Notes: generated by a model from the letters alone, not told the origin. A stretch of 64,000 nucleotides of DNA from Takakia lepidozioides (GCA_030704615.1 CM060733.1:61442001-61506000); one strand, 5' to 3'. Shown: positions 7,687 to 50,700, counted from the first letter of the stretch. Program-made: numbers and translations.

Positions 7687-10080
7687 ATGAGGCTGGGGGG
7701 TGTTACCGTCTCAGCAACTCCTAACGGTACACTAGGGAGGAGCTTTGCGGACTTCGGGGGTATGCCCGCTGGGTTGATGGCCCCTCCGCGACCGGTGCCA
7801 CCGCTGGCGTTGTCTCGCCCACCCCCGAAAAATGTCTATGAATCCTCTCCGGGCCTCTCACTGGCCCCCCCCAGTGGCCTTGAGGGACAGCGCGAAATGA
7901 GCCAAACGGCTGAGAGTGAGCAACAACAGAAAAACAAAGAGGAAGAGTATGAAAGCAGGTCAGGCAGTGACAACATGGAGGGAGGCTCTGGTGATGATCA
8001 GGATCCTGATCACCCACCTCGCAAGAAGAGGTATCACAGGCATACGCCACGCCAAATTCAAGAGATGGAAATGGTGTTCAAAGAGTGCCCCCACCCTGAT
8101 GACAAGCAGCGACAGCACTTGAGCAAGGACCTAGGCCTGGAGCCCCGTCAGGTCAAGTTTTGGTTCCAAAACCGGAGAACCCAGATGAAAGCCCACCACG
8201 AGCGAGCTGAGAACTCAATTCTCCGAGCTGACAATGATAAACTGCGGTCCGAAAATATTACAATGCGAGAGGCAATCAAGAATGCATCTTGTCCCCACTG
8301 CGGGGGTCCCGCGACCTTGGGTGAGATGTCATTCGACGAGCAGCAATTGCGCATTGAAAATGTGCGCTTGAAGGAGGAGCTTGATCGTGTTTCTTCTTTG
8401 GCCGCAAAGTACCTCGGTAGACCTATCGCGCCAATGGCACCTCTTGCTCTTCCAAGCTCTTCTCTGGATCTGCAAGTGGGCGGGGGCAGCTTTGGCATTC
8501 ATGCAGCACCTATTGGGATGGACATTGTGCAGGGTCCCTCGGTTGCTGATGTAGCAACTCGGCCAGGTGGGCTCACGGATGCGGAGAAGCCAATGGTTGT
8601 GGAGCTTGCTGTCACAGCTATGGAAGAGTTGGTGCGCATGGCTCAAGCTGAAGATCCTCTCTGGATAGCCAGCCCTGATGCTCCCAAAGAACAGCTGAAC
8701 TACGATGAGTACGTGCGCCAGTTTCCACGTGGGATTGGCAGCCGACCTCATGGACTGAAGACGGAGGCCACGCGGGAGACGGGGTTGGTGATGATGAATG
8801 GAGTGAATTTGGTGGAGACACTAATGGACGCCGGGCGCTGGATGGAAATGTTTCCTTGCATTGTATCTCGAGCTCTGACTGTTGATGTCCTCTCCCCTGG
8901 AGTGACTGGAAATCGCAACGGATCTTTGCAGCTGATGTATGCAGAGCTCCAGGTGTTGTCTCCGTTGGTACCCACGCGCGAGATTTACTTCCTTCGCTAC
9001 TGCAAGCAGCATGCCGAGGGCGTGTGGGCTGTGGTGGATGTGTCTGTGGATAGCCTTCGAGACAATCCTCCACCATCTTTGATGCGCTGCAGAAGGCGTC
9101 CTTCAGGCATGCTGATCCAGGAGACCCCAAACGGATACTCTAAAATAACAGCAGTGGAACACATGGAGTATGATGATCGCGCTGTCCACGGCATGTATCG
9201 AGCTCTGGTCAACACAGGCATGGCATTTGGTGCGCAACGGTGGGTGGCCACTCTTCAGCGCCAGTGTGAGCGCCTGGCCAGTTTGCTCGCAATCAGTGCT
9301 CCCACTAGAGATCTGGGTGGGGTGCCGAGTGCCAATGGGCGGCGCAGCATGCTGAAACTGGCTCAGCGCATGACTAACAATTTCTGTGCGGGTGTGAGTG
9401 CTTCGACTGTCCATACCTGGACAACACTCTCTGGAAGTGGTGAAGATGACGTGCGGGTGATGACTCGCAAGAGTGTGGACAACCCGGGTGAGCCTCATGG
9501 CATCGTTCTGAGTGCTGCCACCTCTATGTGGCTCCCGGTACCTCCTCAACGTGTCTTTGAGTTTCTTAGGGACGAGCGATTGCGGAGTGAGTGGGACATC
9601 CTGTCGAATGGAGGGCTAGTGGCTGAAATGGCACACATTGCCAAAGGGCAAGATCCTGGGAACAGTGTATCACTTTTGCGAGTGAATGCTCTGAACTCAA
9701 GCCAAAGCAATATGCTGATTCTCCAAGAAAGCTGCACCGACGTGGCTGGCTCGTTGGTCATCTATGCACCTGTTGACATTCCAGCCATGAACCTTGTGTT
9801 GCAGGGCAGTGATCCTGCCTATGTCGCTCTCCTACCCTCAGGGTTCGCAATTCTTCCGGATGGCCCGGAGAACCGACGGTCCATGAGTGTTCAACATGAT
9901 GGTGGGCAACTTGCAGACAGCCCGCGCACAGGAGGGTCTCTTTTGACAGTAGCTTTTCAGATTCTGGTGAGCAGTATACCATCAGCCAGGCTCTCTCTGG
10001 AATCGGTTGCAACGGTAAACAATCTCATATCCTGCACAGTTCAGCGCATCAAGTCTGCTCTGCAGTGCGAGGACGTTTAA
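7687..10080 (+). CDS. Class IV homeodomain-leucine zipper (HD-ZIP IV/C4HDZ; PDF2/ATML1/HDG2-like) transcription factor, intronless, 797 aa
   Basis: Single ORF with homeodomain ([17 protein letters not shown]...[14 protein letters not shown]), zipper-loop-zipper with CPHCGGP, START domain (AMEELVRMA...[15 protein letters not shown]) and SAD C-terminus ([12 protein letters not shown]). Confidence 0.97.
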
Positions 10081-15472: not shown

Positions 15473-17692
15473 ATGGCACGGTTTAGTCATTCACAATTAC
15501 TTCTATCAGGCACCCCCGCAGCTTTCACTGCCATTGACAGAGGACGAACAAGAATCAACAAAAACTCTCCTGGCACTTGTGGGGATGTGAGGACACTGTG
15601 TAAGGCGGGACAACTGAAAGACGCACTGCACATGTTGAACCAACTATGTATTCTGGCAGACTGCAACACTTACGTCTGTCTGTTGCAGGAGTGCATCAAA
15701 ATTAAAGACCTAGCAGCAGGAAAGTACGTGCACGCCCATATTATCCAAACTGGATTCAAGCCAAACATCTTTTTGCTTAACACCCTTGTCAACATGTATG
15801 CCAAGTGTGGGAGGGTGGTGGATGCACGACAAGTGTTTGAGAAAATGTGGGAACGAAATTTGTTTACATGGACCATAATGATATCAGGATATGTCAAGCA
15901 TGGCTATGGTAGGGAGGCTTTTGAAATGTATGGTTTAATGCGATGCCAAGGGGTGACTCCAGACAAGGTCACATTCATTTGTGTTGTCAATGCATGTGCC
16001 AGCCTAGGAGCCTTGGAGAGGGGTAAAGAGGTTCATGTTGACATCAGAGAAGCTGGAATTGAATCAGATATTGTTCTAGAGACTGCCCTTGCTGACATGT
16101 ACGCCAAATGCGGGAGCATGAAGGATGCGCGTCAAGTGTTTGACAGTATGGCTAAACGAGATGTGGTCTCATGGAATGCAATGATGGCAGGATATGCTCA
16201 GCATGGGTGTGGTACAGAGGCTCTTGAGATGTATGAGCAAATGATACGGGAAAAGGCGATGCCCAACAAGGTCACGTTCATTTGCGTTCTCAATGCCTGT
16301 GCTGCCCTAGGAGCTCTGGAAAAGGGCAAAGCTATCCATGCTAACATCATCGGGGCTGGAATTCTGCCAGATATGATTCTCGAAACTGCCCTTGCTGACA
16401 TGTATGCTAAATGTGGAAGCATGAAGGATGCACGGGAAGTATTTCACAGCATAGCTCAACCAGATCTGGTCTCATGCAGTTCCATGATAGCAGGATATGC
16501 TCAGCATGGGTTTGGGAGGGAGGCTCTTGAGATCTATGCGCAAATGCAGAGCAAAGGAGTGACAGCTGACAGAGTTGCATTCATTTCCGTTCTCAATGCC
16601 TGTGCTAGTCTGGCAGCCCTGGAAAAGGGCAAAGAGGTTCATGCTGACATCGTCAAAGCTGGAATTGCACCAGATATCATTCTCGAAACTGCCCTCGTTG
16701 GAATGTATGCCAAATGTGGCAACATGAAGGATGCACGTCAAGTGTTTGACAGCATGGGTGAACAGGATGTGGTCTCATGGAACACAATGATAGAAGGCTT
16801 TGCTCAGCTTGGGTGTGGTAGGGAGGCCCTTGAAGTGTTTGAGCAAATCCAACAGGAAGGCTTGAAGCCGAACGCGAGCACATTTATCTCTCTTCTCTGT
16901 GCTTGTAGCCATGTGGGCCTAGTGGCTGAAGGTCATCACTACTTTTATTCCATGTCCCAAAATCATGGCATTGCCCCAACAATGGAGCATTTTGGCTGTA
17001 TGGTGGACCTTCTCGGCCGCGCAGGAAGATTGAATGAGGCACAAGATTTTATAAACAAAATGCCAGTTGAACCAGATGCTGCAGTGTGGGGCCCCTTGCT
17101 TGGTGCATGCAGGATTCACGGCAATTGGAAGTTAGCCGAATTAGCGGCAAAATGCCTTCTCAAGTGGAATCCACAGCATGCTGGAACTTATGTGCTGCTA
17201 TCGAACATCTATGCTGCAGCTGGCAGGTGGGGTGATCAAGCTAAGGTGAGAAAAATGATGGACGACCAGGGTGTGCAAAAGGAGCCAGGCCGCAGCTCCA
17301 TTGAGGTGGACAACCAAGTGCATACATTCGTTGTAGATGACAGGTTGCATCCACAAATAGATGAAATTCATGTGGAGCTCAAAAGATTGTCTGGACCAAT
17401 GAAGGAGGCTGGGTATGTACCTGATACGCGTTTTGTTTTGCATGATGTGGAGGAGGAGCAAAAAGAATTTTCTCTTTGCTACCACAGTGAGAAACTGGCC
17501 ATAGCTTTTGGACTCATCAGTATGCCCCCTGGGACACCTATCCGCATCATCAAGAACCTCCGGGTATGTGGTGACTGCCACACTGCCACCAAGTTGATCT
17601 CGAGGATTGTCGGCCGAGTAGTTGTTGTGCGAGATGCCAACCGCTTTCACCGCTTCCAAGATGGGGTTTGTTCTTGTGGGGATTACTGGTGA
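15473..17692 (+). CDS. PLS-class PPR protein with E1/E2 and complete DYW cytidine-deaminase domain (organellar C-to-U editing factor), intronless, 739 aa
   Basis: L-S-(P-L-S)x3-P2-L2-S2-E1-E2 array, PG box ([10 protein letters not shown]), [14 protein letters not shown] and C-terminal CSCGDYW. Confidence 0.96.
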
Positions 17693-37894: not shown

Positions 37895-40800
37895 TCACCT
37901 TGGGTCCGGAGATCCCAGATTTTCTGAGAAAACTGGGGAAGGATCGTCTGGAAACATCAAAGGAAATTGCGGAGGGATCTTGACATCATTGTTGGACATA
38001 GTGAAGGATTCGAGGCTTTGAATGGAAGCCATGTATTGGGATGCATTGTTCTCAATGATGAGAGCATCTTCAAGCTCTCTAACGATCATGGCCATGGTTG
38101 GGCGGTGAATCGCATGAGGCTCCACACTTGTGATTGCCATTTCAACCACCCTCCACATCGCCTCCTTTGTAAAGCTGGATGCGATTGTAGGGTCGATTAT
38201 GGCTTCCAAGTTCCCGTTCCCAATGAATGGCCTTGTCTGCACCATACAGACCACTCAACAAGATTTGCTCAGGACTGGCATGCATTACAACCTAGTTAGG
38301 AATGATATAAGGTATTTGGTATATTCAGGTAAGTCATAGTCCAGGATGGAAATACAAGAAATTGTTACAACATGCATCCAACAATTGGCAGTATAACCTT
38401 CACACCCACCTGAAGAACAAATTGTTTCGGGAGGGGACTCATGGTGGAGAAAGAGATGCAGCTTCTATGCTGTTAAGAAAGGCACTTAGATGTGGATTAT
38501 TTAGGAGTTCCGTGTTCTTGCTCGAGAAACCCTTGCCTAAATGATCCTAATTAAATGAAGAAGAAACACAAGTGATTCTAGACTGTAGCCAACTTACCCA
38601 TTCGACAAGACCCCATTCGGGACGAGGACGATGAATATTGAGAGGCTCGCGCCCGCAAATGATTTCCAGAAGTACGATCCCAAAGCTAAACACGTCGCTC
38701 TTCTCAGTTAGAAGCTGCGTAGAGTAGTACCTGCCACAGAGGACAGGAGAGAGGGGTTGTGAGTCAAAAAGGTTTAAAATTTCATGAACACAGGAAATGA
38801 AATGAAATGGTCCTTTATAACATCCGCGGAAAGCTCATAGAGGAAGAAAGGAGGTGAGGGAGGGAAGGGAGCACCAGGTCTGACGATAAGGTGCTTCTCT
38901 ACACAGAGGAAGATGGTGGACTCAAAACGCTCAATGCTCAGACCAATGGAGGAGAGAAAATTAACTGTCGTCATTAACCGTTCCATCCAAATATAGCCTA
39001 TGATACATCTTCAGTGCTTTATTTCCAGGAGATAATCGTTGTAAGGTTTCAGCCCACCAGGATCAATGGGACTCAGCCTGAAATTGCTAATGCAGCTCAA
39101 TTGACATACAGAATTGACTGTTGAGTTGAGGGCTGATATTGGTATTGCCAGAAAGCCTGAAACCTGAGCACTGCTCCTCTAGCCCTCTATTTAGCAATAG
39201 TAGTGACTAAAGTTACACCGCAAGTCACACCATTGACGAATAAGGATAGAAATAATGTACTCGTTATGTGTTCAGTTACTCGTTTAGTCCATCACCTATT
39301 CGGTGCTGGCCCAGGATTGTAGTCTCGTGGACATACAGCAGTCTCTGCTTCGAGGGCTTGTGTTGTGGCTTCACACTCTTGTCCCCTTTTGTTAGGGTCG
39401 ATTTGTCTAGACAGATGTATGTCACTCCAAGCTTTCTCCCCTAATCTATCTCACTTGGTCTCCACCATACCAGCCCTTATGTTGCGGATGACTTTGCAGG
39501 TGTAGGGGAGACTCCGTCCAATCTTCAGAAGTTGATTGATTGTGCAAAGACATACTTCGACCTTTGGGAACTAGAGGCTAACGTCAGTAAATGCGCAGTG
39601 GTGGCATTCAAGGGGAGGGAGGAGGCGATCTCAAGTGGCAGTGGGGAAGCCAAGAGTTTCTGGTCCTCCCTTCCTACCCATACCTTGGCGTTGAGTTCTC
39701 CTCCAACTGTAATTGGGATGCACATATTCAAGAAGTTGTTCAATCTGGCAAGCGCAAAGCGTCGAGTCTCACTAATTTTTTCCACTGCAGAGGGATCAAC
39801 TCTGAAGTGAAAAAGACCATGCTTTGCCGCATGCCCTGGATCTCTGAATTATCCTTTGCTGACTATACCAGCACCTTGTGGCTGATTACGGCATCTGATC
39901 AAGGCCTGCCTTGGAGTACGCATCTGCAGTATGGGTTGATAACTCCAACCAGGCTAAGTCTCTAGAAAGTTTGGCATCCCTCCCTTAAGCTCCCGACGAG
40001 ATGAATTCAAGATCAGATGGTGGGGCCAGTTGCAACATATCACTAATATCAGATATCCTAAGTTAATCAACTCTATAACTTGGAAGCAGGATCGTCCTGT
40101 CAAACAGGCTAAGTCCACAGCCTTGACCCTGCTGGATAAATCTGACATAGAGGCTGTAGTGTCCAAAGCCATGTCTGTTGCCAGCAAATTGTCTGATGAA
40201 AATGAAGTTAGGCAGAAAACTTCCCTGAACTTGTTTCCAGTCTGTGACATGGGTGAGGCCATCATGGATGACCTCAAGGGTTTACCCACCCTCGGCACTA
40301 GACTGAAATTTAAACTCAGGGCGGGAAGCCTACCTTTGAACAGCAAATAGAAGCAGAGAGGAAAGGGGGATTGCAAATGCCCGTTGTGTGGGCAACCTGA
40401 AGACAATATTCAATTGTCTGTTCTAAAGTAAGTCACACAACCGGTGTCAGCCCCTGACAAAGGTAGTTTCTGTCCCTTTGTGTTCTGCTCAAACTGAGCG
40501 CAGGGTCAATGGCCACAAGCCTACGGCACACGACGTCTTATGAGTACATTCTATCTGCACTTGGTGTGTTTCAACCATGCCAGGGGTCACCACTGTTTGG
40601 CTTCCCAAGGTTGTGGTCAAGGTCTTCATTTTCTAAGGTTTCATCTGGCTTGTTTTGCCTTTCCCTGCCACAGAGAGACAGAAAGAAAGAACAAGAACAC
40701 CATTCTGTCCATGAGGCACAAAGGGCCTAAGGGACACCTGAACTTATCAGCTAGAAAAAAGTATCAGCTTCCTAGTCTGTTTGACTACAAACTTGTCTCT

Positions 40801-43800
40801 AAAGCAGTCACACATGCACTGCTTTATGACAAAATCTGGCAGTCATCTTGGTGTGTTGTTCTTCCCTGGGACATTTCCATTTCAGAAATCTGACAAGCTG
40901 CAACCATTGCAAGAACTTACTCGGGGTCCAGATAACCAGCAGTGCCACGAACTTCTGTAGAGACGAGGCTATCTCCTTCTTGCGGGGCATATTTTGAAAG
41001 CCCAAAATCTGCCACCTTGGCAACCATGTGGTCATCAAGCAGAATGTTGCTACTCTTCACATCCCTGTGTATGATGCAGCGCTCTCCGCCCGTGTGCAGG
41101 AAGTAGAGGCCTGTACATAATATGGATGGATGACAAAATCAATTCAGAAACAAAGTATTCCATCACAATCAAGGTCGTGAAACAACGCTGATAACCATGT
41201 TTCCACACTAGACTAAATCAGCTCATGCGACAGAAAAGAGGTGAAGGTAAGTGATGGTCAGGCATCCCAGTGAGCTCCTGACAAAAGCAGCAATACAGAA
41301 AAATTAACCACTTTGGGCTGATGTCCCCGTCCCTCTTTCACACCCTTACTTCAGCCTTAGAAATAGCTTTCAAAACCCTTGAGTAACCATCTGTTACCGG
41401 ATTGCCAGGTCAGTGAGTGAATTTGGAAAAAGCTGACACATCATTTATGCAGGTCATTATGCAGGTCAAGTAGCACTAACATAATGGGAAAGACATGTAC
41501 CACGTGCAGCTCCTAACGCGATACTCAGCCTTGTTGACCAATCAAGGGGTTTCCTTCGTGCTGGTTCACCTGAGAGACAGTGTACTTCTCGTGTCTTAAC
41601 CTTCAGAAACAATGAACTGTACTTAAACTTGACGCAAAAATGCATGTGCGACTAGTTTCTTCCCGGCTCCACTACCTCCTGATTTAGCTCTTGGAATAGG
41701 AAGTGGGATAGATATTTTCACAACTGTAGAAAAGAAAAATCTTAACTGACCACTAATTTGGTCTAATAATCTAGGTCATGGCAAGAAGGCATTGATTACC
41801 ATAAAGTCGATCCTGGAGGGATCCATTTGACAAGTAAGGATAGATGAGGATTTGCTGCTCATCTTCTGAGCAAAACCCCACTAGAGGCACCAGATTAGCA
41901 TGCCGCACTCCATGGAGAAGATTAAGCTGGAAATATGATGCCAACCACAGGTCAATATGCCAAAGTTAACTGAAACATGACCTAAGCTAATCCCACCTAG
42001 GGCAGTCTCCCCGTTGAATAGTCTCCGTGATAACTTACACTGGTTTCGTGTGGACTCAAGTCACACTCTCTACAGATGAGTTCAAAATATTGGTGAAGCT
42101 TCTGAAATTGCTACTGCTGAACCAACTGTATCCTAACCTAAGTATTCATATGAAGTCCAGTATCATGTGAAAGATCTAATGAGCACACGTGTTTGCCAGC
42201 TAGACATATCTGAGCTATCAATGCAATTTTTGTCCAACCTCTCCACCTAAGAAAACTGTGACATTCAGTTTGCCATTTGCATAGTAGGGTAGGCCTTGAT
42301 ACTACTACCTTTACGACTTCAAAACATTGTTATGCCTAAAGGAAAGGGTGGTTCCAAAGGACCTCAGTTGTAAATTCCCGAGTGCCTTGATTTGAGTTTG
42401 CTGAGCGGACTTTAACTGCCACAGTTCGCCCACTTGGGAGGGTGCCATAGTACACAGCACCAAATCCACCTTCACCAATTTTGCTCTTGAAACTTTTGGT
42501 GATAGTGTCAATATCTTTAAGAGTAAATTGCTCTACATGAATTGAGTTTAGCTCCAATTGCATACAATTTGGAACTATGGATGTCAGTACATCTGCACAG
42601 TGCAAGCACGGTACAAGAGTTTAGCACAGAAGCACCGGACCTGACAATTTACTTCCTGTAGGTCCATTGCTGAGTTTGTGTTACTAAACGGGGTTTAATT
42701 TTCATGCCATGATAATCTTTGTGAGAGTCTGCCAAGATGTTTAGCAGATCTTGCAATAAATACATCAGTTGACCCAACAACTCCCCAGCTGATCCAGTAC
42801 TGTGTTCTTCGAGAAGCATTTAAGGGAGGCGAGGGGCTGCTAATGGGCAATGACTGTAGTACAAAGTCTCAGTTTGCAGATGGCATGCTACAGCCAGCCT
42901 GCTACAGTGATCTCCACGGATTGTCTCCCTGGTTCTTCACATTATCACCGCCTCTCATTTAAGGCCAAATTTCTGGCTAGTTCAGTAACAGTTTAAGAAA
43001 CTCACATTTGGGCCCTGGTAGTTTGCCATCGGAGTCAGCAGCTGTGATCAAGTCAAGCTTCTTCCTGTGCTGCTTATAGAACCAATAGATTGTGACAGCT
43101 AGAATGATGAAAAACAGTAGCAGGGATGCCCCTACTACACCTCCCAAAAACAGCGTGGGACCCAGTTTATTCTTAGATGGAGGACTTGGAATCATCTCCA
43201 CAGGACTGCTGCCATCTCTGAGATATCGATCGTCAGCAAGTCTGGCAAAAGAAGAGCAAAAGCACACATTAGCCAACAGCAGTTGTTCGTCAACTAATCG
43301 ATCAAGTACAACCAGACACAAAAACAAGGGATCAGGGAAGAAAATTGTCTTGAGCCTACAAAGCAAGGTTGTAATCTGTTTGAAGTGGGTAAGGCAGTCA
43401 ACTTACGTGAAGTTGGGATTATTCTGCAGCGCCACTGAATATTGTCTGCTCAGATTGGCATGATTTAGATTTCTGCCCCCCCTCCAAATGTTAAAAAGGT
43501 TTTGGAATTTCTTCCACAGCATGAAGGGAGACATGAGAAAGAAAGTAAGTCATGCCCTACGGATTTATGTTGGGCTGTGTCTCTAGGCAAGAAATGAGGG
43601 GGACGTATGACGAAGAAACCAATAAAAGACAGCAGGCTTTACTGACCAACAGCTGAAAGGGGGGAGAGATAGGCAGAGGAGGCCATGTGAGGGGCCGAAC
43701 AGTACGTTTGCAGATTGGTCTAGCATGAGATGTAGCAGAGATCTCTGTCTCTCTTGGTCGCTGACAGATGCAGATTGGATCTGCGTAACTGCGAACAGAT

Positions 43801-45522
43801 TTTTCAACAGGAGTTTCATGATTGTTCAGGAGCACTGTGGAATTTGTCATCAGACATAGCCATAGGTGATCTTGTGAGAGGAAGGATATTTTTCAACAGG
43901 AACAGGCTGATCAAGACAAGACCTAAAGAAGGTCTGTGGCAAGGGATCTAGACCTGCTCATCCAGTTCTACAGAGAAATTTCCATTGACATCCAGAAACC
44001 TTCTGATGCCCTACTAACCTACCTTGTTTTCCACATCCCACAGTTGGGCAGTGAGCATTTTCAGAGTCAGATCACACTATGCATCAAGACAGGCAGAGCT
44101 GGTGCAAGAATAGGATTTGTGCCGTATGCAAAAACTACTAGCAGAAGTAACACCATTTTGTGTCTCCTATCCATTACACTGCAAGATGAGGGGAAGTACT
44201 GTCGTCTCACAGATTGCTGAGACCCTCAGTTATCAAGACCAGAAGTTAAGAGCAACACCAGAGAAGACTATCCATTTCTGAACATTATTGGGGAGTGTCA
44301 GGTAAAGCTCTTAGCTTGGAGAGGGGGTCTTACATTTGGATTTTGGAAATATGTTTAGTACCTAGGCTTTCACAAACCTGCTTGCATCTTTTCCAACCCT
44401 CTCTCCCTCTCTCGAAGTGCTAAGCAGCTGCTGCTGATCTGGCTGCAGGAAGTAGTATGCAAAAACCTTGGGATCGAGGGTTATACGGGACCGTTATGCC
44501 TCGGCGGCCAATGCTCTCATTCGGGCTGAGGATCATTTGGTTTAGCAATCTCCCGTTGGAACTTTCTATCGGTGCCATAGGCCCTTTGGGCTTTCTGTGG
44601 ACATGGATAGTTTCTCTCCTTTTCTGTTCTATATAAGATTCCCGCTCAAACTGGGCGCGGGGTCATTGGCCACAAGGCTACGGCAAACAACGTCTTATGA
44701 GTACAATCTGTTCTATATAAGAGTTTCCAGTTTGTGACATGGGTGAGGATGATCTGAAGGGCCACCTACCCTTGGCCCTGGACTGAAATGAAAACTCAAG
44801 GTGGGGAGTCCACCTTTGAACAATAAACAGACGTAAAGAGCAAAGGGAAATTGTCCGATGTGCTTGTGGCCTGCACACAATATCCATTTGGGGCACGAGC
44901 GACCCTCTTCAGGACCATCAAGAACTTAGTCCCTGCACCTCTGTTCATCAACTTTCAAAATCTTGAGGCTGAGCCTAGCCCTGGCCATCTGAGGGTCTGG
45001 GCAGCAGACTGATGCGTGTGTGAAGGGCTATCTAGAGGAAATCTGGAAAGCCCAACTCATTGTTTTATCAAGGTAAGTCCCACTACTGGAGGGAGCCCCT
45101 CACAAAGGTAGTGTATGTTCCCTTCCTGGGTGTATGGCCACAAGGCTACAGCAAACATCTTATAAGTACATTATGTTCTCTATAGCACTGGCAAAGTCAA
45201 GAACTGCTTTTACCTTGCGCATAAACTCTTCAGAACCAACTTGATATCTATGTTAGATCAGTGTGCAGCAGGCATAGACACTGCTATCTCAAATGACATC
45301 TTTCCTTCCAGCTGAAACATCAACATAGCCAAGTGCAGAGACATGCCATTGAGTATTGAGCTAACAGACTCACACGTTGTCCAGGTAAGATAAATTACTG
45401 CAGCTCATTGGAATGGAGCCATGCAGGGATTTTCCTGTGCAATTCCTGACAGTCACAACAAGCAGCATCAGCACCCCCCCTGCTTCCAATAGCCAATCAC
45501 GCAAGAATTTCTGGTGCAGCAT
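37895..45522 (-). CDS. SYMRK: SYMRK/DMI2/NORK-type LRR receptor-like kinase with intact kinase and reduced ectodomain (5' end uncertain)
   Basis: Exons (-): 45445-45374 (LRR; open upstream to ATG 45522/45558), 43472-43407, 43241-43006 (TM), 42592-42363, 41926-41800, 41569-41501, 41110-40921, 38730-38598, 38236-37895. All phases join (513 aa from ATG 45522). SYMRK-diagnostic strings: [116 protein letters not shown], terminal PDPR. Confidence 0.9.
39400..40556 (+). mobile_element. 5'-truncated degenerate LINE (RTEX/L2/CR1-like rather than L1) in a SYMRK intron, antisense to the gene
   Basis: RT motif ADDF at 39484-39495, [43 protein letters not shown]-terminal [22 protein letters not shown] and 3' tail ccacaagcctacggcacacgacgtcttatgagtacattctatct. 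Frameshifts and stops present. Confidence 0.8.
44640..45182 (+). mobile_element. Two head-to-tail 3' fragments of the same LINE family
   Basis: gctcaaactgggcgcggggtcattggccacaaggctacggcaaacaacgtcttatgagtacaatct (~44644-44709) is followed directly by tttccagtttgtgacatgggtgagg...ggccacaaggctacagcaaacatcttataagtacatt (to ~45172). Both are homologous to 40234-40556. Confidence 0.8.
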
Positions 45523-47484
45523 ATTCTGTGTATGGCCCAGATCTAGTCCTGGCTGCATTTAAGGTGATCTCATTACTTTTATGGCATTACGGGTGTCCGA
45601 AACTTGCGATGCCGTTACCACCGGTGGTTTGAGTCTGCTGCAGATGTGCGTATGACACCTTCCCGCGCAAAGGCCAGTTGACTATTATTGGAGAAATGAA
45701 ATGGTGTGAAATTAGCCACATTACCCACTAAAAAAGCCAGAACTGGGCTGTGATGTACAAGGGAAATCCAATAGATCTTAGTTTGTGGGATGCCCCATAC
45801 GTGGGACACCTTATGAATTTTACCGTGGAAAGCTCATAGAGCTCATGGGAGAGCAATGATCCCCATCGCAGAGAGTGGATTGAGATTTTCTGTACTGATG
45901 CTCAGACACGGGCCTTTCACAGTTTTGCCAAAATTCCCAATACCCCTGGTGTTTTCACACAATGATGCCTCTCTACGTGTGTATTCGAAGGCTGGTATGG
46001 ATACGATTTTGCAGGGTGCTTCCTGTAACCATAAAATTCTCCTTCCAATCATGTTCAATAGTAGAGTTGCGGGAGCTTCTACTTGCCTGCCAAGACCGCC
46101 CTGACTCGTTAGCAGATCGAATGCTGCGAAGCGATCCTTTGAGTTACATGGACTTGTCGGATGGACCTGCTGTAGCCTGATAAACCACTCCGTGGTAATC
46201 TCTTGAACATCCAAAGTACAAACCTCAAAGGCAACTCATCGCAGTTGTCTTACGTGAATTGACGCGTTTTGTTTCCGTACCAAATCATGATCAACAGACG
46301 GGATCGAGAGATGCCCAGGCAGCTGTGCCAGCTGCCTCACTTTCTTCAACCTTCCTGACTAGCCTGTCCCTCCAGTCCCCCCAACATATTCTTCCTCCTC
46401 TCTCCCTCTCTTTCCGTCTCTCCAGCTGACTCCACATAAGACGAACAGTGCGATCAGAGCAATGCCATAGGCCTGTCCTGTCTCTGTGCTCCCCACCTGC
46501 CTCGCACCTTCACAATTAAAAGACAGACTACAAACACATGACAGTCAGAATCCACATAGATATATTCCAGACGAGCATCCCCTGCCTTTGGCATCTTTCG
46601 GTCCAAGAATCTGTCGGTCATCTGCTGGTGGGGCCGTTTTGGACTATTTGGGAGGGATGCTTGCAACTCGAGTCAAGAATGTGTAGCACGTAAGCACGCC
46701 ATGCGCCACGTTTCTCTACCACCACCTCCCTTCTATTCCTCGCCTTTGTCGAGAAAGAGATTCCATTGTGAGTAGCAAAACCAGCATAGAAAGGTTGGTG
46801 AAGCCACAGTGAACCAGAGTTGTTGTTCAACTGCTCTGCACATGATGGGGCTGAACAAGACTGGGGGTTGTGAGAATCCAGGGTGAGCAAACTCAAGTGC
46901 AGTAGTTGGACACAGATCAAATTCCTTGTATGATCACAATTAATGGGCAAAATGCCTGATTCAATGTCTAGGATTTCTCTCTTTGTCAGAAGGTCAGAGT
47001 ACGCCACTTTCTTGGCACTTGTGGAAGCCCATAAGTTGAGCAAGTGGAATTGGTGTGAAAGGGGTTTACATACAAGATAAGTGTGTGGTGTTAGTCGTGG
47101 TGACAAGTGAATGTCTTCAAATTGGAGTGAGGTTAGTGCACAGCGGGCAATTAAAAGGAACCCAACGGTGGAGATGTTCAATGGCAAAAATGTCGGCAAG
47201 GCATAGAAGAGACACGGTAGATAAGAGTTCTGTGGGATGTCTCAAACTCAGGCTGGTCGAAAGGCACCAAAGGAGAACAAGGGGGTGAAGACAATGCCTA
47301 GGAATCAGCTCATTAACAATCAACTCGGACTAGAGAATCAGCCATGCTCTCTTAGACCTGCAAGCTGTGCCAATCCGCCACCCATCGATTTCGGACTTTG
47401 TCCAAATCGACGCCTGCAAGATACAACAAGCAAACTCGAAAGTCTTTAGCTTACACAGATAATGCTATTTACAAGCAAAGAAGA

Positions 47485-47640
47485 ACGAAACGAAATGAAA
47501 TGGTAATTTATAATGTCCACAGGGAAGCTCAAAGAGCTTATGGGACGAGGAAGAAAGAAACAATAAAGAGAGAGGAGCCACAAACAGCCCAAAAGCACCG
47601 AAGAAATGAAATGGTACTTTGTAACGTCCACAAGAAGAAA
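47485..47640 (-). repeat. Tandem copies of a dispersed repeat ending in (CATTT)n, probable retroposon 3' end
   Basis: gaaatgaaatggt..ttt(a/g)taa(t/c)gtccac at ~47492 and ~47603. A related copy gaaatgaaatgaaatggtcctttataacatccgcggaaagctcatagag lies at ~38794-38841 and a partial one at ~45827-45842. Confidence 0.65.
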
Positions 47641-47733
47641 GAAGAGTGTGAAGTACAGAGAAAGACAAACAAGATATTATGATTTTTTCACAAAGCATAA
47701 TTGTAACATAGATTCATCTAGAGGGTAGCAAAA

Positions 47734-50700
47734 TTACTTGTGAAAATCATCTCTCATCGGGATGTCTATACAACATGGAGCACCATGCATGGTGCCATTC
47801 ACCAGTCCGTCAAATGACATATGAGGGTTGATCATGGCCATGCTATGTGGAGGGCTGCACTCAGTGAGAACCAGGTGTGATGGTGGTACTGGTGTCGAAA
47901 TCCTTGAGGTTCCCTGCGCCATTTGCTGCAGTCGTGCTCTTGCCAGCTTCGATGCTATTTCTGAGTCTCCTACCTGCTCCTCCCATTAGTCCTCCAGTCA
48001 AGCTCACTCTCTCTCTCCCACAAGGCTACGGCAAACAACGTCTTATTATACAATCTCTCTCTCTCAACATGAAAGAGTGTTACAGACAAAGAGCTTAATC
48101 CCAAACACAGAAAGGCTTCAACACTTACTTACAATCAGGGAAGCAGCACTTCAACTATTTGCTTCCACACTGTGTTAAGTGTTAGCTATGTAGATCATCA
48201 ACTGACATATCCCTGTGAGGCTCTTGCAGTCCATTTTCAACACACACAGCATTAGCTTCCAGGTAATATCAAAGTCAACTATTTCTATTGCAAGTGGGAA
48301 GACAAGGGCACACTTTGTTGCTGGCAGCCATGGCCACGTCGCGGGAGGTAACAGAGCGCTTGACACGCTCGCGAACCTGGGAACGGCGCTGCATTTTTAT
48401 CTCCTCCTCCAGTGAAGCCTTGTCGCCCTTCAGTTTGTTCATCTCTAACAACAGCTGGTTCACTGTGTTCATCAGATCCATCTTCTCCACCGGGATGCGG
48501 CCACTGCGCGGCTGCCTTATCAAAAACTGCACCCCAACGCTCCCGTACTTGAGTACAGAGCGGATAGGGAGGGAGAGGGAAAAGAGGGTGAACGCTACTA
48601 ATCAGAGAGCCCTCCTTGCATTGTCACGCACTTGCATTCTAGATTCATACAACAATATGAGACTGTTGCAGAGTCACTTCAAACCAAGCCAAGCCAAGTT
48701 TGCAAATAACTGAGCTACTATGGGACTGACTAGACAGGGAGTTGTTTCAGCATATTTGCAGCTCAAACTCTCAGGATCAAGCATAAAGTTGAGTCTACTG
48801 GTGCCTTGGTCCAGCAGTTCAAGAGGAACAGGCAAACATGGAAGTTCAAGAGCGCGACATCCAAAAAGCCACAGAGTATAGACCCATAGTAAACAGAAGC
48901 CTCTCTAGACAGCCCTGATTATTTAGTCACCTTCTGATTAAGCTTCAACGTCTCCAGTTCAGTATTCACTTTTTCGTTCTCCTGCATTTCATCCCCAACA
49001 CACCTTCAGTTCCCAAAGCAGAGCTGTAGCTGGCAGAAAATTCTCTGCTTCCAGATTTTCCAATCTGCCCCATTGTCCCTATTGAAAAAACAATTAAAGT
49101 GCCCCTTTACCCATGCCTTACAGAGACACATCGTGTCTTGATAAGCAGACATGAATGGTGACTTTCCTAATGATAGCAATTCAGAGAGGAAGGACCTTGC
49201 GCAAAGCGAAGAGCTGGGACACAAGTTGTGAGCGCGCTGAGGTTTCGTCCTTAAGGCTGGCTTCCAGCAACGCACGTGACCCCTCCACGGTGGCTAACCT
49301 ATTTTGCAGAGCTTGGCACTCCCTCTGCATCTCTGCAAAGCGGCTCTGCCCAGCTGCCTCCTCCGTTTCATACATCTTCAACTTTGCCTTCAACTGCTTC
49401 ACTTCAGCATTGAACAAATTCTGCCCCCAGCACCACCTCACCACCTCAGTGGCCTGCCACATATATTTATGCCAATGGACATAGGTGGCGAACTGTCCCG
49501 CTCAAGAACTTGATTTGGGTAAATAGATGTGTGCAAGTTTACATAACCAGAACGTTCATCATGAGTAATACAACCACAGGTTACAACCAAAAAGGCAACC
49601 CATGATCTCCTGAGGTTGGAATCATGAGAGGTTCAATTGGTGAGGTTCTTGGGTGACTGAGAAGTCCAAGCAGAATATCAGGGCATACGCATGGATGGTC
49701 AGAGACGCAGATCTAAAAGCTGCTATCTTGTTGATTAGGACTGAGTTACAAGTGGTTTTCTATGGAGCAACAGAGCTCTGTTGAAGTCCCTTGCCAGGCT
49801 GTATCCACTATATGCTACATTTACCAGGAATTAACCCGTCTGTATCATTAGCAGGAGAGTAGTTGAAACCATGTTACCAATATAACCACAAGCTACAGGA
49901 GGGAAAACCTGCAAAGAATGCAGCTCTTGCCGCAGCATATTCTTCTCAAAACCCACGTCATCATTGGTAGAGGACAATGGGCCCTGTTTCATTGTATGCT
50001 TTGAATCCCTCTCTCGTGCCACCTGGAGCTCTGCTCTCAGCTCTTCATTCTCCTGCTTTAACTGCATCCACCAGAGACACAACATCTAAGTTCATCAAAA
50101 CAGCATTTTACATTCTGAGTTCTGTGAGATACAACAGATTTTCTGTGATGACAACCTCTATACTTGTTGACCTCTGAATTGTGGAGGCCCAAAGACCTGC
50201 AGCAAGATCTGATTCAAAACAACAGAAATACACAATACTTTGGAAGCCCTGATACAGAGAGGAATGCCACAGGTTGTCCTACGCCTTTCAGGTGCAGGTA
50301 GCCTGCTAAAAGCTGTGCAGTACATATCAGTAAAGAAGCAGGAAAAATCAACCAACCTTGCCACGAATCAGGACAAGAGTATCATTCTTGGCGTCCACAA
50401 TCACCCGTAGTAGCGTGAGCCCACTTTCCAACCTTGATAACTGGCCCCACATGAAAGGTAAGAAGAATAGCAGCCAAAAACCATGCATCCTTGACATGCA
50501 CCTTACAGGTAAATTGATGTACTGTTTTTACCCGTTTTATACAGAGGATGAGCAGACTTGGGTGAATAAGGTCCACTGACCAACTGACCATCCTATGCAA
50601 TTCACCTGAGTGGTACTCAATTAGAAAGGCCCCAGCAATAAATGACTTGATATCCCTAGTATCCCGGAATAAGCCACCTGAATCAAAAGGTCCCAACTGG

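Follow-up and report, generated by a model that had tools for sequence, protein, structure and literature searches.

In a 64,000-nucleotide stretch of the Takakia lepidozioides genome (GCA_030704615.1 CM060733.1:61442001-61506000; hereafter the window, with positions counted from its first letter), we identified a gene that, on the evidence of sequence comparison, is an orthologue of the symbiosis receptor kinase SYMRK, a clade I receptor-like kinase with a malectin-like domain and leucine-rich repeats (MLD-LRR-RLK). The gene lies on the minus strand from 37895 to 46504, comprises ten exons, and is both spliced and transcribed. Neither the locus nor its transcripts encode a malectin-like domain or a GDPC motif, so that the gene can only yield a SYMRK with a reduced N-terminus. 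We consider it reasonably probable that exons coding for the signal peptide, malectin-like domain and a working GDPC/LRR cap have disappeared from this SYMRK gene, with the transmembrane (TM), juxtamembrane, kinase and C-terminal parts remaining under constraint; a functional truncation of this kind is more likely than decay.

Transcript evidence was taken from contigs of two public sequencing runs (X1 and X2) that belong to two studies. As these contigs carry exon-exon joints, they derive from spliced RNA. The joints 43241/43407 and 45445/46087 were present in both runs, and a 682-nt X1 contig (record 5) was unbroken over 46086-46504 and continued downstream via 45445. This arrangement defines an exon 1 (46087-46504), spliced to the 72-nt LRR exon, that was missed in an earlier note on this DNA made from the sequence alone; of that note's claim that only two exons, of 66 and 72 nt, lie upstream of the TM exon, the exons themselves proved real and the word "only" did not. 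The joint at 45444/46086 has four ambiguous letters, and a recognised intron type (GC..AG) results only at 45445/46087; the eight downstream introns are GT-AG. The 5' end at 46504 is a minimum, the mRNA starting at or before this position, approximately 0.5 kb downstream of the 3' untranslated region (UTR) of the neighbouring gene, and neither run yielded contig coverage over 46643-47036. Junctions between the kinase exons were drawn from the sequence rather than from listed RNA joints. The parts of the gene, from 5' to 3', are as follows.

46087-46504, minus strand: exon 1, a non-coding leader with seven upstream ATGs (X1 contig, with the same joint in an X2 contig)
46087-46235, minus strand: part of exon 1 that shares the reading frame of the LRR exon, 49 open codons without an ATG, closed upstream by the TGA at 46238-46236
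45446-46086, minus strand: intron 1, GC-AG, donor AG/GCAAGT, which holds the candidate ATGs 45558 and 45522 (RNA joint)
45374-45445, minus strand: LRR exon a, 72 nt, motif KSLxGSIP, first in-frame ATG at 45408-45406 (RNA joint and orthology to LRR1 of Marchantia paleacea)
43407-43472, minus strand: LRR exon b, 66 nt, a degenerate LRR (joint 43241/43407 in both runs)
43006-43241, minus strand: TM exon, with the outer juxtamembrane region, TM helix and basic stop-transfer stretch (covered by X1 contig record 1)
42363-42592, minus strand: K1, with the inner juxtamembrane region, glycine loop and catalytic lysine (sequence comparison)
41800-41926, minus strand: K2, kinase exon (sequence comparison)
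41501-41569, minus strand: K3, kinase exon (sequence comparison)
40921-41110, minus strand: K4, with the activation segment (Pfam Pkinase)
38598-38730, minus strand: K5, kinase exon (sequence comparison)
37895-38236, minus strand: K6, with the C-lobe, the alpha-I motif with four serines, the C-terminal tail and the stop at 37897-37895 (PDB matches to SymRK)

The intracellular half of the receptor is intact. Across the TM exon and the six kinase exons there are no internal stops, the phases chain, and the introns are GT-AG, bearing out what the earlier note had said of these exons. Searches, alignments and the tree described below used the exons one by one. Translated singly, the kinase exons cover the whole intracellular part of SYMRK without a gap, from the inner juxtamembrane region to the last residues of the tail. 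Pfam recognised Pkinase on individual exons (K4, E 1e-7), and the glycine loop, VAVK lysine, HRD, DFG and activation segment are all present. The exon at 43241-43006 encodes a single TM helix, a hydrophobic stretch followed by a basic one, positioned between the ectodomain remnant and the kinase; its best match is to residues 499-572 of M. paleacea SYMRK (E 4.6e-6).

Assignment of the gene to SYMRK is supported by identity, phylogeny and gene structure. Over the kinase exons, identity was 59-75% to 37 SYMRK-group proteins (Psilotum being closest at 75%, with M. paleacea at 70%), as compared with 37-47% to 13 other MLD/LRR kinases, an outgroup sample that includes an At1g67720-like protein and does not include a named SHRK3 (clade II; 10.64898/2026.05.08.723708) sequence. 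When the six exon fragments were placed separately in a kinase tree, 6/6 fell within the SYMRK clade (Shimodaira-Hasegawa-like support 0.94, stem 0.48), the tree not resolving their placement inside it. The earlier note's view of the gene as a member of this clade is thereby upheld, as is its appeal to SYMRK-specific strings, three of which are present here and in most SYMRK-group proteins and in 0/13 of the outgroup kinases. Each kinase exon matched full-length proteins annotated as "nodulation receptor kinase". A search with K6 against 1.84 billion representative proteins returned SYMRK-type sequences first (a Selaginella "nodulation receptor kinase", Taxus, Adiantum, Diphasiastrum and a fern-like transcript) and nothing closer than 64%, the Takakia protein itself therefore not being represented there, and its only matches in PDB were the SymRK structures 6m0u and 8peh. 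Four alpha-I serines align to S877, S885, S889 and S893 of Vicia NORK, the third offset by one residue; the four serines of this motif are essential for signalling in Lotus (PMC10895371, from which the motif definition was taken). The C-terminal tail is of SYMRK type, conserved to its last residues and similar to that of M. paleacea, and intron positions and phases are conserved relative to the M. paleacea SYMRK gene (L004). Weak tblastn matches at 57.6-59.2 kb raised the possibility of a second kinase gene in the window, which we rejected, as the open reading frames (ORFs) there show nothing kinase-like.

No counterpart of the SYMRK ectodomain was found upstream. Full-length SYMRKs searched by tblastn against the 64-kb window gave, upstream of the TM exon, only a weak match on the 72-nt exon; a profile hidden Markov model (HMM) of 84 SYMRK ectodomains, run against all stop-to-stop pieces of the 64 kb in six frames, gave a best E of 0.4; and Malectin_like was absent by Pfam from the ORFs of 45.6-47.7 kb. 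Applied to the M. paleacea SYMRK locus as a positive control, the ectodomain HMM recovered all ectodomain exons at E 1e-39 to 4e-4 (malectin exons, 1e-39 and 5e-36; GDPC exon, 3e-11; LRR exons, 1e-4 to 5e-6; the TM exon was also found), and the negative result in the window is therefore meaningful. Where the GDPC motif with its flanking W...C cap (WxxDPCxPxxWxxxxC) would be expected, the sequence reads TSPC, in an untranslatable frame and with no second W/C. The earlier note's impression that the gene lacks a malectin-like domain and GDPC has thus stood up to these searches, of which the tblastn and six-frame profile runs, both without an ectodomain in the 64 kb, are of the kind that it had itself suggested.

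Comparison with M. paleacea indicates what remains of the 5' half. In the M. paleacea gene, the signal peptide comes from exon 1, the malectin-like domain is split between exons 2-3, and the GDPC segment occupies exon 4 (168 nt); LRR exons of 72, 69 and 72 nt come next, with all boundaries in phase 2. The donor of Takakia exon 1 has the phase of the M. paleacea exon 4 donor; the exon that follows it, LRR exon a, equals M. paleacea LRR1 in length (72 nt), phases, first codon and the motif KSLxGSIP; and the TM exon starts in the same phase in both genes. Because of these correspondences, the 3' end of exon 1 is the equivalent of the GDPC exon (exon 4), a positional relic recognised by position and phase only. 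It reads DVQ...TSPC where relatives read DVQ/DVE...GDPC. We rejected homology by sequence between this relic and the GDPC exon: in semi-global alignments with shuffling (z < 1), similarity of the 3' part of exon 1 to GDPC exons was at chance, with z from -1.5 to 0.8 as against 10-17 for the M. paleacea exon. Also rejected was a relic signal peptide at ~46440-46480: this stretch, hydrophobic and in the same frame, lacks an in-frame ATG, and stop codons isolate it. Two exons have the size and phase of LRR exons. LRR exon a remains recognisable against SYMRK LRR1 regions (z 4-7). One of the three ancestral LRR exons is missing, and LRR exon b, which the earlier note rightly called degenerate, is not above chance against SYMRK LRRs (z at most 1.5) and lacks the GxIP part.

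The reading frame supported by the transcripts begins late. Exon 1 has an in-frame TGA at 46238-46236 with no in-frame ATG downstream of it, and the seven ATGs of the leader lie in other frames, opening upstream ORFs of 1-48 codons. The first in-frame ATG, at 45408 in LRR exon a, has a weak context (CCAATGA) and opens an ORF of 1,428 nt (475 aa), the only long one, which spans nine exons without stops or frameshifts and would encode a stub of ~63 residues, the TM helix, the basic stretch and the kinase; read from the sequence and without a predictor, its N-terminus is polar and has no signal peptide. The earlier note had proposed a ~513-aa product with a signal peptide recruited from an intron. 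The frame that it saw, open to the ATGs at 45522/45558, does exist in the DNA, but falls within intron 1 of the observed transcripts, in contigs of both studies; the real exon 1 lies 0.64 kb further upstream than the first exon that was proposed, and the transcript-supported ORF of 475 aa is without a signal peptide.

The contrast between the two halves of the gene is an argument for functional truncation. No disabling lesions were found in the TM and kinase exons; such lesions as there are all lie in the 5' ectodomain part. Of the alignment columns with at least 95% conservation among SYMRKs, 8/149 differ in this gene, mostly conservatively, and 9/152 in the functional M. paleacea SYMRK. The kinase thus shows no relaxation, while similarity in LRR exon b and in the relic within exon 1 has fallen to chance level, a difference that points to selection maintaining the intracellular module after loss of the outer part.

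Several observations weigh against this reading. The gene has neither a signal peptide nor an in-frame ATG in exon 1, and seven upstream ATGs ahead of a start in weak context predict poor translation. KSLHGSIP, the half of LRR exon a that is conserved, precedes the ATG at 45408; its conservation is odd if it is untranslated, and hints at either (i) a recent change, or (ii) an unseen start. Other mosses are reported to be without SYMRK, so that erosion is the expected direction (10.1101/804591). Finally, the two runs are Logan contigs whose RNA status was guessed, and they show the presence of transcripts rather than transcript ends, abundance or rare isoforms.

Several of these features would be expected of an expressed pseudogene in the course of being lost, in which the 5' exons have been deleted, a fortuitous promoter drives transcription, little or no protein is made, and the kinase looks intact for lack of time. 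The stop at 46238-46236 and the other defects of exon 1 agree with such a history, as do the degenerate state of LRR exon b, the absence of one LRR exon, the loss of SYMRK in other mosses, its pseudogenisation in Marchantia polymorpha (10.1101/804591), and the erosion intermediates reported in Acorus (10.64898/2026.05.08.723708). We nevertheless regard this account as unlikely, if the most serious of those that we weighed. The conserved kinase columns show no excess of change over the functional M. paleacea gene, the eight downstream introns are still GT-AG and the ORF is unbroken, and both the alpha-I serines and the extreme C-terminus are conserved; moreover, the ectodomain relics are already at chance level, which argues that the two halves differ in constraint and not merely that little time has passed.

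Alternatively, as the earlier note proposed, this might be a short SYMRK with a truly secreted ectodomain, its signal peptide, in front of the two LRRs, being supplied by a minor or conditional transcript that begins in intron 1 (ATG 45558 or 45522) or by an unseen 5' exon. From 45558 the frame is open into the LRR exon and encodes an 11-residue hydrophobic core (mean Kyte-Doolittle 2.6), a low-depth contig lies just upstream at 45587-45957, and the best conserved part of LRR exon a is found upstream of ATG 45408. However, no contig of either run covers 45446-45586, and the splice 45445/46087 is seen in both; the contig at 45587-45957 looks like pre-mRNA, resembling the similarly low-depth coverage of other introns; no typical cleavage site follows the hydrophobic core (by reading, with no predictor); and a folded two-LRR domain is unlikely because LRR exon b is degenerate. 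We therefore think a secreted form improbable. More improbable still is an assembly artefact, in which a misjoin upstream of exon 1 removed or displaced malectin exons that the organism does have: 524 bp upstream of that exon (46505-47028) have no RNA contig, but the 64-kb window has no N run and no composition break, transcripts on both sides are collinear with the assembly, and the in-frame stops of exon 1 would interrupt any coding exon spliced to it from further upstream.

If SYMRK has been functionally truncated, as we favour, the single TM helix may act as a signal anchor for membrane insertion, leaving the ~63-aa stub facing outward and the basic stretch and kinase in the cytosol. Such a protein could work as a ligand-blind SYMRK signalling module, activated perhaps through partner receptors or according to how strongly it is expressed. 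Its likeness would be to either (i) the Lotus fragment that remains after release of the malectin domain, or (ii) a short monocot SYMRK reduced by one step further. Work in Lotus offers a rationale: the symbiotic signal is carried there by the cytoplasmic domain, the indispensable part, and the ectodomain can be swapped (PMC6024595), and Lotus symrk mutants regain mycorrhiza when given rice SYMRK, a form that has no malectin-like domain (PMC2270324).

The first of these likenesses concerns the membrane-bound piece of SYMRK that remains in Lotus once the malectin domain has been released (Antolin-Llovera et al. 2014, summarised in 10.64898/2026.05.08.723708). Like the Takakia form, it is a membrane-bound SYMRK without a malectin-like domain, with a cytoplasmic domain that is needed for signalling (PMC6024595). 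It differs in being cleaved from a secreted, folded ectodomain and in keeping three LRRs, whereas the Takakia form is genomic and its outer remnant is a short stub, probably unstructured.

The second likeness means that the gene is not unprecedented: in rice, maize and other commelinids, the SYMRK gene itself normally encodes a protein without a malectin-like domain (PMC2270324; 10.64898/2026.05.08.723708). Short monocot SYMRKs (Musa, 554 aa; Elaeis, 566 aa; Asparagus, 521 aa) share with the Takakia gene a clade I kinase, the absence of a malectin-like domain, a first exon that is the exon 4 equivalent, two LRR exons, and the TM and kinase parts. In the monocot proteins, however, the signal peptide is still present, the GDPC/Cys-cap segment is intact and the LRRs are well formed, whereas in Takakia the exon 4 equivalent is untranslatable, GDPC and the signal peptide are absent, and one LRR is degenerate. 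M. paleacea SYMRK (940 aa, L004) represents the full form: it is ~70% identical over the kinase exons and, beginning with the exon 4 donor, has its introns at the same positions and in the same phases, but has signal-peptide, two malectin and GDPC exons, these first four being absent from the Takakia gene, as well as three LRR exons.

Reduced forms also occur in lycophytes and ferns. Diphasiastrum complanatum has SYMRK-clade genes for proteins of 435 aa (L005, CM055092.1, 10001-35780) and, on another chromosome, 440 aa; no malectin, GDPC or LRR exons were detectable in the L005 gene and 10 kb upstream of it. Gene models, and gene models only, from Adiantum capillus-veneris (428 aa) and A. nelumboides (423 aa) consist of TM and kinase. 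Like the Takakia gene, these encode a SYMRK-clade kinase preceded solely by a short N-terminus and a TM helix. In the kinase tree they group with their own lineages (lycophytes and ferns), so that the reductions look independent. The Diphasiastrum and Adiantum short forms, which are database gene models, were not found described in the literature searched. Among fern-like transcripts (P0002; Logan contigs L001 and L002; SRR32617135 and SRR32617110) we observed a SYMRK-clade protein of 683 aa in which the signal peptide is followed by just the first half of the malectin-like domain, without GDPC or LRR, and then by TM and kinase; P0177 (629 aa) is built in the same way. SYMRK remnants are also known from lineages that are leaving or past intracellular symbiosis, as in the M. 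polymorpha pseudogene and Acorus (10.1101/804591; 10.64898/2026.05.08.723708). There the genes carry point mutations, deletions and insertions, and Acorus is without the activation loop, whereas the Takakia kinase is complete.

Mosses keep CCaMK and CYCLOPS, and SYMRK is reported lost from them (10.1101/804591). Takakia is the one moss reported to host fungi and to keep symbiotic GRAS genes (PMC6232258); in the literature searched, SYMRK in Takakia was mentioned only in 10.1101/804591. We put forward, as a tentative and rather doubtful proposal, that the common-symbiosis receptor operates as an ectodomain-less SYMRK in the sister lineage of all other mosses, and that moss, lycophyte, fern and monocot lineages shed the ectodomain independently. 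If true, what is conserved and essential in SYMRK would be its action as a membrane-anchored signalling kinase blind to ligand, and the malectin/LRR part would serve as a regulator that can be dispensed with. The gene would be either (i) a snapshot of a receptor being dismantled from the outside in, or (ii) a natural experiment in which the intracellular module alone is worth keeping; taken with the lycophyte, fern and monocot short forms, it makes what the SYMRK ectodomain is needed for a directly testable question.

Two further features adjoin or interrupt the gene.

47029-47413, minus strand: last exon of the neighbouring gene, with the stop at 47340-47338 followed by the 3' UTR (contigs over 47029-47412)
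44476-45263, strand not assigned: short dispersed repeat copies in intron 2, not coding capacity of the gene (RNA-contig word depth; direct repeat D2)

The neighbouring gene (47029-48528, minus strand) is spliced between 47412/3 and 47737/8 with CT..AC ends in both runs (47738/47413), and has a second splice at 47971/48312. The earlier note had placed its stop at 47734, which is a misreading: the TAA at 47736-47734 is the start of an intron, and the real stop is at 47340-47338. Contigs of the 3' UTR reach 47029, and the ~2.3 kb that had been taken for free upstream space is reduced to ~0.5 kb. The dispersed repeat has the core GGCCACAAGGCTAC, with related copies near 40.5 kb and 48.0 kb. Over 44476-45263, RNA-contig word depth in the two runs ranged from ~400 to 25,000, exceeding the depth over the surrounding gene by a factor of hundreds to thousands, and chimeric joints were numerous; the repeat looks like a highly expressed family resembling short interspersed elements (SINEs) or miniature inverted-repeat transposable elements (MITEs) in introns.

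Elsewhere in the window, on the plus strand, a class IV HD-ZIP protein (PDF2/HDG-like) of 797 aa is encoded by one uninterrupted ORF at 7687-10080, with identities of 84% to Physcomitrium and Ceratodon, 82% to Sphagnum and 81% to Marchantia. Genes of this family are normally multi-exon, and the intronless copy may be a retrocopy. In a tree, it was sister to all sampled mosses (0.91), the other mosses grouping together at 0.999 and mosses with liverworts at 0.995. Also on the plus strand, at 15473-17692, is an intact DYW-type PPR protein of 739 aa, a candidate organellar RNA-editing factor whose best database matches (Diphasiastrum and Ginkgo) are ~55% identical. The SYMRK gene looks as though it belongs to an early-diverging moss lineage, which fits both the HD-ZIP IV tree and the presence of the DYW-type PPR gene.

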